Shown one piece after another: positions 17,389-35,300 of a stretch of 64,000 bases of DNA (within the stretch, counting starts at the first letter, position 1; each line of letters starts with the position of its first letter). The notes under the pieces are model-generated. The model was not told the origin of the DNA. It ran no database searches and worked only from the letters and a program-made list of their open reading frames with translations. Where the stretch lies: the NCBI GenBank assembly GCA_024704765.1, contig JAKMXF010000322.1:186001-250000 (forward strand), given 5' to 3'. The position numbers were made by a program, and so were the translations under genes. This DNA is from Oopsacas minuta. Taxonomy: Eukaryota; Animalia; Porifera.

Positions 17389-20300
17389 ATGGCTAATGCT
17401 AAAGTGGATTGCAAAGTTGTACTACTTGGGAAGGAATACGGAGGCAAGACCTCTCTTGTTGAGAGATTCGTACACGGAAAATTCCAAGATGGAAACGGGA
17501 CATATCAAAACGTGAGTTTAGACTATTCAATCAATCCACAAATATATGTCTACGAATATCGAACACGTCAGCCAAAAATTCGCCAATTTTCAAACCAATT
17601 TCTTTCATTTTCATAGAAATATTTTCACTAATTGATGAGGTGTTAATGACCTCTTTATTTAACCTAAACTACCACGATACCCTCTTGTGTACCCTAATAT
17701 GAACCCGCGTACGCCAAATACGTCCATGTCCATCAAATTAATAATAATTACATTGACTACACTAGGCAGACAAAGTAATTGAGTAATTACTCGAATATTG
17801 CTGATATAAGCTTAACAGTAATATTCGTGATTTATAGTTTCATATTGCGTTAATTACGTCGTCTAACCGGAAGTATCTGGAAATATATTTTTATTTTCAT
17901 AAAAATATCGGAAGTGACAATTTTTCAATAAAAATTATCTTTCAAGTTTGAGGTTTCTTGCATTAATCTGTTTGTATTGTGTTTTAACATATTTCCATAT
18001 TCGTAGAATTATTGATTGAAAGTATTTGCCAATTATGGTTCCATATTATACATATTTATAAGTGGATTTAAAGCATAATTCACATCGTTCAGTTCCCGTT
18101 TATACTTCTGTCCATTCAGCGAAGATATTCGAGGCCTTATTCAGTGATAGGATTGGAGACCACTTTGCATTTACTGTGTGGACATTTGAAAGCATCAATT
18201 GAATGTCTTTAGTGCCTCCAATTATAGTGTCATTTTAACGAATTTAATTAAGCTCTAAGCTGTTAGCACAGAGAGTAATTTAAGATTTTTCCATTTGTGC
18301 CACGTATACTTGTGTCGAGTAGAGCCACTTTTAGATCTATTATTCTTCCATTTATTCTCTAAGCTCCCTAGTAACCCATTAATGAGGATGTTATGTATCT
18401 AAATTAGTAACAGAATTACACAGCGAATATTCAACTGACTTTATGGAATTATATTTTGCCACTGGAATGCACCTTAAAATTCAGATTGTGGACATTATCA
18501 AATACTTCCTGCTTAGCATGTTCTCATGCAAATCAATACGAGGCCATTTGTATGGACTTGTAGAGGAACCATGATTGAATTAGTGTCCATTAATGAAAGA
18601 CACTTTTTCAAAATGGCTGTAATCTTGGTTAATTATGGAGGTGATAAATTAATCATATTAGATGATTAATATGATTAATTTTTGATTAAATAAATTCTCC
18701 TTATTTGTGTTTATTTTTAACAAAGTGCATTATTCTCAAATCAATATTCTAATGATGAATGCTGTTTTAGTAATTCGTAATATTTAAAATATCATATTTT
18801 AGGGACAGTTCCAGTCATTTTAATATTATTTCAATAAAATACAAAATTTTACTCAAAATTCTGTCCTGATTGCGATGGTTCAGCACTTTCTGTCCTCCAT
18901 AGCTGCTGAACTGCCACTAGCGTTCGTACGGCCCAAAAGGCGGACATATCTATATACACATACATCTTAATGATTCAAGCAACCCTTTAATTTGATAAAA
19001 TGTCCTTATATGGAAGTTATGATTAAGCATTACTCATATTTATAGAATATCTTTGGTGTAACTGATTTTCCATTAGGTGTCTTTGTAAGTTTACTACGGG
19101 GGTATTTGGTTACACTTTCCAGAGGATATCATTATATTTGTAAGTTATACGTCTTAACTCTTTGGATAGTTGCAAGATTGGTTGCTCTGGTTAGTTAATA
19201 TTAATTTGATAACAAGAGCTATTTATCCCTGAATTCACGAAAAACGGGTATTCTTGCATCTTTTTGGCACATCGACCCCTCCTTGGACAATTTGGACCCC
19301 TAATCAAGGACGTAGACCCTTGACAGGACTCTGGGTATCGACTTGCTCCCGCCTCGTATTGTTATAATTGAAAATTTGATAAATATATTTATTCATATAT
19401 GTTATAAGCAAGTGCATTAGTAGCAAAGAAATTAAGCATTAGCATAGCAACAGGTAAGTGTAGATGGAATTTATAAATAATTGATAAATATATAAGTTAA
19501 TTTTGTTGATTTTCTTGTATTTTTTCCCAGAGCATTTGTTCTAGTTCAGAATAGCTATTTTCTGGACAAGTGAATGTATGGATGGGACATTCACGGTTTA
19601 GTTCTATCTGGTCTTTGAAGTATCCGTCGAAAAATGGATGGTTGAGTGCTTCTTCCGCCGATAGCCGCTTGTGTGGGTCGAATTCCAAAAGTCCTTTTAG
19701 AAGATTTTTGAGATTTTCCCCTCCTTCTTTACAAAGTTGGTTTGTAGAGAGAATATTATCTAATTCGGCGATCTGATATTGAGGGAAAGTCGATAGTCTT
19801 TTCAAGGAATCTTCTGATAATTTCGGATAAACACTCGCGAAATCTGGACAGCCCAAAATCTCGCATATTTTATTCAAATGTCTGTCGTCATTCAAATCTT
19901 TTTCATCAACTTTAAATATACTTTTTCCAACGCAAAGTTCGGCAAGGATGCATCCTACAGACCACATATCGATTTTCTTATCATAGTCCAATCCAAGCCA
20001 TAATTCTGGCGCTCTATATGACCGCGTGACTATTTTCTTTGTCTTTTTGTTGTTAGAATCGAAATTGGCTAAACCGAAGTCCAAAAGCTTTACATTTGAT
20101 TCATCGTCAATGCCAATATTTCCCGGTTTCAGGTCTCGGTGCATTATATTATTTTCATGAAGATAGTGAACTGCGTAGATCATTTCGCCGACAATCTTTT
20201 TGATATGCTCGAGGCCAAGTTCTGTTTCGATCATGCTCAAGGTCCCTTCCATAAACTCCATCACGATGTAGAAATAAGACATTTCTGATTGTCGCATAAC

Positions 20301-32300: not shown

Positions 32301-35300
32301 CTGAAGTTTGTTGACTTATTTGAGGGAAATTTGATAATTCGAGTTTTTCTCCACCAAAAATGTCGATTTCTAATCTGTTGTAATATTCGCTAGCTCCAGT
32401 TTCTTCGAAGTATTCATGTTGAAGGGCATCTTCAAATGATATCCTGTCTTCAGGGTCGAATTGTAAGAATTTTGATAGCAAGTCTCTGGCGAGTTCGTTT
32501 CTATCCGAGTTTATGTTTTCCATTTTTATCGAATCATCTGGAATCAAGTTCTCCATTTTTTGGCCTTCGCAGTTTTTGAATATTTTTTGAGTGCTAGCAG
32601 GAAGTTTGGAGATAAATCTTTCATTCGGTGTGCCAGTTATTCGCATAATATCTGTGAGTTGATGGAATTCATGTCTCTCCTTAAATAACTGTTCACCAGT
32701 AAGCAATTCCGCAAATATGCAACCTAACGACCAAATATCAACTTTGTAATCATACGACGTGTTTAAAAGTATTTCTGGCGCGCGATATATCAAAGTTTGG
32801 ACTCCGCTAGTCATTCGTGAATTGTCCGCACTTTTTTCACGCGCCATCCCAAAATCCAAAAGTTTCAGCGTATAATCAGATCTTATTCCAATATTCGACG
32901 GCTTCACGTCTCTGTGAATTATATTTCCTTGGTGGAGTTCCTTCAAAGCGATCAATAATTGGTAGATTATCAGTGCCAATTGTTCGTGAGACCTAAGTAG
33001 TACATCATGTAACGTATTTTCCATATATTCCATCACTATATAGAAGTCTTCCATTATTTCACCAGATTTCGCTGGTGTGAAAACGTCAAGAAGTGCAACC
33101 GTGTGTCTGTTCTTTGAAGACTTCAAGAGTGTCAATTCACGGAACCAATATTTTCCCAATGTTGGGTCGATGCATTTGATCTTTTTTATTGCAACAAATC
33201 GATCGTTTTGTGTATCATATGCCGAGACGACGACTCCGTAGGATCCTTTCCCTACAAATTTTGCGTTTTTGTACTGTGTCTTTAATGTGAAACATTCGGT
33301 CCCATCCAATATAGTTTGATAAAATTCAGTATTCATTTTGTGTATATCTGTAGTTAATATGATTAGCTTACAATCGCTTGTATTTATACTATTTTCTACA
33401 AACAGTATTCTACTTTCACTTTAGGGAATAATCCAACTTACTCCAACATTTCCTTGAATTATATTACCCGAATTAATAGTGCTAAGTATATACAGTCAAG
33501 GGACAAAAGTATTCGACCACATGAATATATTGTCATAAATTGTATACTTTTTCCCGCTCCTATATATTGTATAGTCTATATTCGTAGCTGCTATTTAGTA
33601 ATTTGTATAGAATAACATATGTTTTTCAAGAATTTCAAAATAAAATTTCGATTCACACTTTTTGAAGGTGTTAATTATTAATAATTATTAGATAATTATT
33701 AATAGTCAAAATATGTGGTAATTCAAAACCTATTAAGAATCTATAATTTCTGACTTGATATTTGAATTCTACGTAGGCGAGTTACCCCAGATTGAAATTT
33801 CCAATCGGATTGAACAACTTTTACCAAAGTTATAGAGGAATTTCAATTTGTGTCAATTGTGCCACCTTTTTCCCAAGGTGGCACAAGTGGCCGCTACCAA
33901 GAGGTTATTTTGTAATTCAAGGGTTAGCATAGTCATATCATTCGAAAATATTACTTTGACTTATTCCTCCTAACCCTAGTTGATTTCCTTGTAGTGGCGC
34001 TTTTTGAAAAAAGTGACACAATTGACACAAATTGAAATTCCTCTATAACTTTGGTAAAAGTTGTTCAATCCGATTGGAAATTTCAATCTGGGGTAACTCG
34101 CCTACGTAGAATTCAAATATCAAGTCAGAAATTATAGATTCTTAATAGGTTTTGAATTACCACATATTTTGACTATCAATAATTATCTAATAATTATTAA
34201 TAATTAACACCTTCAAAAAGTGTAATCGAAATTTTATTTTGAAATTCTTGAAAAACATATGTTATTCTATACAAATTACTAAATAGCAGCTACGAATATA
34301 GACTATACAATATATAGGAGCGGGAAAAAGTATACAATTTATGACAATATATTTATGTGGTCGAATACTTTTGTCCCTTGACTGTATACATTTGTATAAT
34401 ATATTGTCATATTACATCAAATTACCTGGATTATTTAGTTCAAAATCTTATAGCAAACATCTCAATATGCTTAATAGATTACCAATCTGTGCTATTTAAT
34501 ATCTAAGTACACTGGCGCAATGTATTTATTCTAATTGTATGATTACAGTCTTTTAGTTTCAAATTTGATAATTTTCACCTTCATATTCTAAGGGAATTAT
34601 TTTTTATTTATGATATAATTCAGTTCGATTAAAGATTGATTTTCCCAAAAATCTATTTATCCCCAAAGTTTTCCTCAAATATATTTGCTCATATATAATT
34701 GTGCTATTCTCAACTTGTTAGTAGTTATACATTAACGGGTGGTGTTCCCCTATTAGCAAGTTTTTAGGGTCCATTTTGTATTGGAATTGTGCAAAATGTG
34801 ACTTGCTAATAGGTGAACTCCACTGTAATTCAGATAAGAAACATTTCCTGATTATACAAGTTCTCCTGCAATGGACAAAACACACTTGTAACTTGTTTGT
34901 GAAAAGCTACACATTTTTCTGTTAATTAACCGTAAAGCTACAGTTACATTTATTTCCGTTTTAGACAATTGGAGCAGCTTTCGCGGCCAAACGCATATCC
35001 GTTGGTAAAGAAACTCTGACGCTTGGAATTTGGGTAAGAAATTTACTTTCATTTCGTTTTATGAACTTTTTGACTATTAGGCTAATATTTGAAATTTACA
35101 GTTATTTGTGAATTAACCGTTAAACGCTATTCTCAGTTCAGCCACATATTATTAATTATAAATTTGTCAGCTTATTTAGGCTTAAATAAGAAGTGTTAGT
35201 TTCAGGTTTATTTCTTGATTATCAGTGACCACCTGATCTATATTTTCACACAATAATGTGATCATTTATTTGTGTTAAAACTGCTGAGTAATTTGCCCGA

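Follow-up and report, generated by a model that had tools for sequence, protein, structure and literature searches.

The DNA analysed here is a 64,000-nucleotide stretch of the Oopsacas minuta genome (contig JAKMXF010000322.1, positions 186,001 to 250,000), called the window below, and all coordinates count from its first letter. It contains three protein kinase genes, K1, K2 and K3, which are the kinases 1, 2 and 3 of an initial annotation that had described them as SAPK-like kinases with intact catalytic motifs but no TxY activation motif. Each gene is a single uninterrupted, intronless open reading frame (ORF). K1 lies at 19497..20630 on the minus strand and encodes 377 amino acids. K2 lies at 24315..25508 on the plus strand and encodes 397 amino acids; its ORF was listed as 24309-25508 and the first ATG is at 24315. 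K3 lies at 32242..33336 on the minus strand and encodes 364 amino acids. The Pfam Pkinase profile (263 positions) is matched over its full length by all three proteins with E values of 1e-58 (K1) to 2e-60, and the analyses below assign all three to the JNK subfamily of MAPKs.

The kinase genes are nested in the first intron of a host gene, Rab24, on the plus strand. Rab24 exon 1, recognized by its ORF and splice site, occupies 17389..17511 with the donor GT at 17512. Intron 1 covers 17512..34964 (17,453 bp, ending with AG at 34963-34964), and the start of exon 2 (TIGAAF...GIW) lies at 34965..35036. Within 150 bp upstream of each kinase start codon (20631-20780 for K1, 24165-24314 for K2 and 33337-33486 for K3) we found the octamer TATAAATA, which looks like a shared core-promoter element. 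An AATAAA follows the stop codon of each kinase gene at 13-103 nt. All three genes lack introns and look like transcription units of their own inside Rab24 intron 1.

The VAIK Lys, the alphaC Glu, the Asp of HRD, the KPxN Asn, the DFG Asp and APE are all present in K1-K3 and, in a residue table of 7-9 orthologues per gene, invariant. Judged by these residues, K1-K3 are predicted to be catalytically competent eukaryotic protein kinases. They also keep YRAPE with its CMGC Arg, the MAPK insert and the C-terminal L16 helix, as members of the MAPK family do. K1 is the most divergent paralogue: its G-loop has lost the first glycine, and the Arg that follows DFGLA is gone. In HMMER alignments to solved JNK structures, the activating T183-P184-Y185 of JNK falls over T-K-K in K1 (codons 197-199, 20034..20042, minus strand), S-M-H in K2 (codons 219-221, 24969..24977, plus strand, preceded by Arg-Arg-Met in an R-R-x-S context) and T-S-G in K3 (codons 176-178, 32803..32811, minus strand). 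The ORFs, the Pkinase matches and these alignments bear out the description of three intact kinases without TxY. The loop strings given in the initial annotation (KKTKKIVTR, RMSMHMVTL and RMTSGVQTL) were correct, including the Ser that takes the place of Thr in K2.

None of the 25 orthologues examined has Tyr at the position found in conventional MAPKs (0/25), nor do two further family members described below, K4 and KAI6660018.1. In nine K1 orthologues the Thr never varies, and Lys (8) or Asn (1) occupies the position of the Tyr, giving the pattern [K/M/L]-T-x-[K/N]. A 17-residue loop stretch is identical in 9/9 K2 sequences, whose whole proteins are 67-80% identical, and seven K3 orthologues conserve [R/Q/K]-M-T-[S/N] together with the next 11 residues. 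The residue at the acceptor position is thus invariant, Thr in K1 and K3 and Ser in K2, and it is never acidic. The earlier suggestion that each kinase had lost its Tyr differently goes beyond these data: all five paralogues lack the Tyr, and one loss in their common ancestor, with later divergence of the loops, would explain this just as well.

Three arginines hold the phosphothreonine in active MAPKs. Two of them, that of HRD and the one beside the Glu of alphaC, never vary in K1-K3; the third, which follows DFGLA, persists in K2 and K3 and is lost in K1. The phosphotyrosine-pocket Arg (V-T-R) is replaced by Leu in every K2 and K3 sequence, and K1 has Arg or Lys there. The acceptor stands in a basic context, R-R-M-S in K2, R-M-T in K3 and K-x-T in K1, whereas JNK has the hydrophobic F-M-M-T-P. 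This context provides a basic residue at -2 in all three kinases and also at -3 in K2. In all three, R69 of alphaC is replaced by Phe or Tyr and three residues are deleted before alphaC. At the docking-groove and common-docking (CD) positions of JNK, R127 is His or Gln, Y130 is replaced, D326 is lost and C163 is kept only in K2. K2 alone has an N-terminal extension of ~46 residues (residues 1-46, 24315-24452), modelled with low confidence, in which R-[S/R]-N-S and L-[R/K]-R-x-S are conserved in most orthologues and form basophilic kinase contexts. A second in-frame Met of K2 (M-A-T-N-R) matches the start of P0010, a transcript-like version in Logan.

Orthologues were collected by word-based searches of ENA and Logan assemblies. 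Those of K1 (P0002-P0009) are 63-75% identical, those of K2 67-79% and those of K3 (P0238-P0243) 63-71%; beyond the orthologues, identity falls to about 37-46%, with MAPKs of other organisms. One K2 orthologue, P0016, is a TRINITY transcript of Vazella pourtalesii (EukProt EP00800), and the genomic scaffolds that match it come from Vazella metagenome samples. The transcript and the matching scaffolds identify the lineage as the glass sponges (Hexactinellida). About seven other assemblies carry orthologues with the same loop motifs, so sequencing error, which the initial annotation had named as a possible origin of the loops, is excluded. In addition, contigs of four runs of the source sample, compared across 19520-25508 (K1 and K2), agree with the window over both genes except for two synonymous variants in the coding sequences. 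By contrast, over 2.2 kb of adjacent intergenic sequence a second haplotype carries 13 substitutions and one indel.

In every species read, the ORFs of all copies run without interruption. Pairwise ratios of nonsynonymous to synonymous substitution (dN/dS) are 0.04-0.09 for the closest pairs, in which dS is unsaturated; pairs from distant species were dropped because of saturated dS. Purifying selection on K1-K3 is strong. The K2 orthologue is transcribed in Vazella, and K4 and one K2 orthologue sit on short, transcript-like Logan contigs. No run recorded as RNA contains this stretch. In run X4, one of the four runs of the source sample, summed contig depth reaches 1e5 to 5e5 across the ORFs of K1 and K2 vs about 170 between them, a ratio of ~1000x, with edges at the ORF ends; the run also carries an Illumina adapter end. 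This pattern resembles that expected of an RNA library.

Searches against solved structures ranked JNK above p38 for each protein. The best match of K1 was JNK2 (4.9e-54), with 187 bits for JNK vs 179 for p38. K2, the paralogue closest to JNK, scored 296 bits with JNK1 vs 234 with p38alpha, and K3 scored 229 bits with JNK1/JNK3 vs 205 with p38. K2 and JNK1 align end to end: the alignment begins with the N-terminal F-Y-x-x-x-I-G motif and includes the C-terminal L16 helix. An AlphaFold model of K2 (predicted local distance difference test, pLDDT, 80.9) was compared with known folds by Foldseek, and the best 50 matches were all JNK1-3, with a template modelling (TM) score of about 0.88 and ~358 columns superposed.

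Phylogenetic analysis gave the same assignment. Three maximum-likelihood trees were built under LG+C20 with posterior mean site frequencies (PMSF). K1, K2 and K3 form one clade with 100/99 support, and addition of K4 and KAI6660018.1 leaves a single glass-sponge clade supported by 96/95 to 99/97. This clade joins the canonical JNKs with 100/99, 100/99 and 100/97 in the three trees; p38 is the next group out, and ERK, ERK5, NLK, MAPK15, CDKL and CDK lie further out. Because the clade is monophyletic with JNK to the exclusion of p38, ERK, ERK5, NLK and ERK7, we assign K1-K3 to the JNK subfamily by descent, though not by the T-P-Y signature. The SAPK-like label of the initial annotation was too broad, since by trees and structure matches these are not undifferentiated SAPKs but JNK-subfamily members. 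The demosponge JNKs (Suberites, Ephydatia) group with bilaterian JNKs (97/92 to 100/99) and not with the glass-sponge clade, and an approximately unbiased (AU) test rejected a union of the glass-sponge clade with demosponge JNK (p = 4.6e-5). One reading is that the glass-sponge clade represents a paralogue lineage which predates the split between demosponge and bilaterian JNKs. Alternatively, its stem is long (0.3-0.44, to which K1 adds 1.25-1.39), and this may pull the clade outwards as a long-branch artefact.

Two further members of the family, P0402 (K4) and KAI6660018.1, came from an exhaustive profile search of 1.84 billion representatives, which returned no relatives closer than JNKs outside the glass-sponge set. 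K4, from a 1.2-kb Logan contig, has the loop R-M-T-S-G, as in K3. KAI6660018.1, an Oopsacas minuta protein auto-named 'MAPK 9 isoform X5' in GenBank, has E-P-T-R and is encoded by a single 1029-nt exon; its locus (L012) shows no EDF1 in the neighbourhood. The multi-domain proteins among the top matches of this search (P0386, P0388 and others) contain several kinase domains whose scores were summed, and they are not relatives. Vazella pourtalesii and Oopsacas minuta are the only organisms on record for clade members. The family proposed in the initial annotation is indeed lineage-specific; it comprises at least five paralogues and not three, and its lineage is the glass sponges.

The locus is conserved as well as its products. 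The order Rab24 exon 1, K1(-), K2(+), K3(-), Rab24 exon 2 recurs in loci L001, L006 and L008, and Rab24 exon 1, 95-100% conserved, lies upstream of K1 in six related loci. In one subgroup K3 is >10 kb from K2 on the same contigs. Alsin-like neighbours recur upstream of Rab24 in L001, L006 and L009. The arrangement, the genes and the gene-specific loops are conserved across all readable glass-sponge assemblies. Taken as a whole, it is very probable that K1-K3 are ancient functional paralogues within a JNK-derived family of at least five members, none of which has TxY and which these searches detected only in Hexactinellida.

Canonical JNK (MAPK8/9/10, and JNK P0169 of Suberites domuncula) is the sister group of the glass-sponge clade, and K2 is 42-46% identical to it over the full length. 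It shares with K1-K3 the Met gatekeeper, YRAPE, the MAPK insert, the L16 helix and all catalytic residues. It differs from them in T-P-Y, in R69, in the docking residues, in the residues deleted before alphaC and, for K2, in the N-terminal extension. A 2024 MAPK phylogeny preprint found T-P-Y in all JNK homologues sampled, with two demosponges only as sponges (10.1101/2024.10.01.616093), and MAPK8-10 are among about 39 core animal-specific families present in every animal surveyed (Richter et al., PMC6040629).

Several other kinases resemble K1-K3 in their loops. Nematode JNK-like kinases are fast-evolving, lineage-specific members of the JNK subfamily with altered loops, such as S-D-Y in P0397, which we take to be KGB-1-like, and T-K-N in P0406 of Strongyloides. 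They fall outside the glass-sponge clade and so have an independent origin; the S-D-Y type keeps the Tyr, and a canonical JNK (P0144) coexists with them. CDKs (T-loop T-H-E, followed by V-V-T-L-W-Y-R-A-P-E) have a single activating Thr and, like K2 and K3, T-L at the phosphotyrosine-pocket position. However, CDKs are the outgroup in every tree, their cyclin-binding PSTAIRE helix is absent from K1-K3, and K1-K3 have the MAPK insert and L16 helix. We also observed broken TxY motifs in JNK- or p38-like kinases of other lineages, namely P0406 (Strongyloides papillosus), P0425 and P0415, with T-K-N, T-G-K and T-T-C, respectively; the Tyr has therefore been lost repeatedly in fast-evolving SAPK paralogues. 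A separate set of proteins, P0038, P0046, P0056, P0089 and P0101, are single-ORF ERK5-like MAPKs with a normal T-E-Y, from the same ENA accession series and on contigs of up to 1.4 Mb. Should the P0038-type proteins come from sponges, canonical dual-site MAPKs would occur side by side with the TxY-less JNK relatives, and MAPK genes without introns would be nothing unusual in these assemblies.

Could K1-K3 belong to a known MAPK family without TxY? ERK3/ERK4 (S-E-G) and NLK (T-Q-E) also have one loop acceptor and a non-aromatic residue in place of Tyr, and the T-S-G of K3, with Gly at the Tyr position, resembles the ERK3/4 loop. ERK3/4 are activated by group I PAKs and NLK by autophosphorylation, in neither case by a classical dual-specificity MAP2K. 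ERK3 and ERK4 read SPR where K1-K3 have APE, and their long C-terminal extension has no counterpart in K1-K3. ERK3 was absent from the best 60 PDB matches of each protein, which were JNK and p38 only although ERK3 structures exist, and the MAPK phylogeny preprint derives ERK3/4 from ERK1/2 (10.1101/2024.10.01.616093). NLK is on a separate branch with ERK5/ERK in the tree, where its representative P0304 groups with ERK5-like sequences; MAPK15 is also elsewhere, and NLK gave the lowest BLAST scores of five references against K1-K3. The glass-sponge clade is instead sister to JNK (100/97), and in trees that sampled JNK, p38, NLK and MAPK15, but no ERK3/4, it did not group with NLK or MAPK15. Membership in NLK, ERK3/4 or ERK7 is scarcely credible. 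It could also be argued that the genes are retro-pseudogenes or kinase-dead scaffolds, given that they have lost the regulatory TxY, are intronless and nested in an intron, and in K1 have an altered G-loop. Intact ORFs, dN/dS far below 1, invariant catalytic residues, group-specific loops and the Vazella transcript effectively refute such decay, which we regard as very improbable, and they uphold the earlier view that the genes are functional.

The history of the family in relation to canonical JNK is a separate matter. It seems moderately probable that glass sponges have kept a canonical JNK and that K1-K5 are additional neofunctionalised copies, which may have arisen from a retrocopy and then by tandem duplication. 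All members are intronless, and their clade lies on a long stem outside the canonical JNKs of demosponges and bilaterians. On the other hand, a canonical glass-sponge JNK was not actually seen, and intronlessness is weak evidence for retroposition because long single exons are found in many genes of the window, and similar assemblies include an ERK5-like TEY gene that likewise lacks introns. The converse proposal is that TPY JNK was lost and that this family provides the only JNKs of glass sponges, with K2 as the most JNK-like member and the module rewired in a syncytial lineage. After the K2 orthologues, the next matches of K2 are JNKs of other phyla at 42-46%, and no TPY protein shows raised identity to K2. 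The alignment of K2 with JNK1 over its whole length, N-terminal motif and L16 helix included, and the loss of other core animal signalling genes in glass sponges (PMC10280926, PMC6040629) also agree with a replacement. None of the searches found a canonical TPY JNK of a glass sponge; since the ENA gene calls consist of single ORFs, however, an intron-bearing JNK would be fragmented and missed by length-filtered searches. Of the TPY proteins in the match lists that were considered as glass-sponge JNKs, those that could be assigned proved to be Ephydatia or other demosponge-like sequences, or came from the unrelated NCBI assembly GCA_001077375.1. The AU test suits an extra paralogue lineage better than a replacement, although long-branch effects could give the same result. 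We consider the replacement unlikely. Its fuller form, in which TPY JNK is absent from glass sponges and its role has passed to single-site, MAP2K-independent JNK derivatives, each with its own basophilic kinase or autophosphorylation, is a still more doubtful proposal.

As to how these kinases work, the likeliest explanation is that K1-K3 are active JNK-derived atypical MAPKs which are switched on by phosphorylation at one site. They are probably still proline-directed Ser/Thr kinases, because YRAPE, the MAPK insert and the L16 helix are kept. Their activity would probably be gated by a phosphate on the single retained loop Ser/Thr, and not on Thr plus Tyr, in the manner of ERK3/4, NLK or CDKs, because the acceptor is invariant and so are the HRD Arg and the alphaC Arg, which receive phosphothreonine. 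In K2 and K3 the phosphotyrosine-binding Arg appears to have become Leu along with the loss of the Tyr. The residues fit RD kinases that need one loop phosphate and no longer use the second. Constitutive activity, which the initial annotation had raised as a possibility, is argued against because no acidic phosphomimic occurs at the acceptor position.

More speculatively, the activator may be other than the classical MKK4/MKK7 pair, because there is no Tyr for an MKK4-type kinase, R127, Y130 and D326 are replaced and the acceptor context is basic. Such a context would suit basophilic kinases like PKA, PAK or CaMK, or else autophosphorylation, and either route appears somewhat more likely than the classical MAP2K pair. 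We only infer the MAP2K independence that had been suggested for these kinases.

Several points weigh against this explanation of K1-K3 as single-site, JNK-derived kinases of glass sponges. The Thr or Ser that remains in the loop could still be the target of an MKK7-like MAP2K specific for Thr. K1, without the first G-loop glycine and the DFGLA-R Arg, could be weakly active or work differently. The activity of K1-K3, the phosphorylated site and the activator are all things that we infer from the sequences. The docking roles of R127, D326 and E329 are assumed here on our understanding of the JNK1-JIP1 literature. The three trees contain no ERK3/4 sequences. Run X4 has no RNA label in its record, and contig depth reflects expression poorly. 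Finally, the restriction to glass sponges means that the family was found only there in the databases searched, in which few sponge sources have a species on record.

The literature that we searched, combining glass sponge, Hexactinellida or Aphrocallistes with JNK or MAPK, gave no description of TxY-less JNK relatives of glass sponges. JNK, MAPK and intronless genes all go unmentioned in the main text of the Oopsacas genome paper, and the planar cell polarity (PCP) paper has JNK only in a reference. This conserved glass-sponge family of JNK-derived atypical MAPKs is real and apparently undescribed, as the initial annotation had suggested it might be when it spoke of a lineage-specific signalling family.

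JNK is generally regarded as a kinase shared by all animals, with a T-P-Y switch that does not vary. The glass-sponge kinases represent an old and selectively maintained branch of the JNK subfamily without the loop Tyr, and two of the paralogues also lack the phosphotyrosine-reading Arg. They offer a natural experiment in which a conventional MAPK has turned atypical, and they add a separate origin of atypical MAPKs to those of ERK3/4, NLK and ERK7. They also bear on the remodelling of signalling in glass sponges, which are syncytial and in which Wnt and other core genes are absent. The practical value is modest, consisting of single-site activation hypotheses and of sequence variants that could inform JNK regulation. 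The significance would be greater if canonical JNK proves to be absent from glass sponges.

The remainder of the window encodes other genes. Further parts of Rab24 lie downstream of the start of exon 2, at about 35571-35625 and about 35860-35960 on the plus strand. Directly upstream of Rab24, pieces of an alsin-like gene with RhoGEF, PH_alsin and MORN repeats occupy 11936-16998 (plus strand). A TRPM-like channel fragment at 92-2353 and an unassigned 387-aa ORF at 2775-3938 are on the minus strand, and a giant FAT-like cadherin with many long exons extends over 43719-63364 on the plus strand. A MetAP2 fragment is also encoded in the window, which is AT-rich, with 30-40% GC. Between K1 and K2, the segments 21720-21920 and 23520-23920 have contig depths 6-40x those of their surroundings in DNA runs, with many loose ends and joints; because of this raised depth and the loose ends and joints, they are probably dispersed repeats or transposon fragments.

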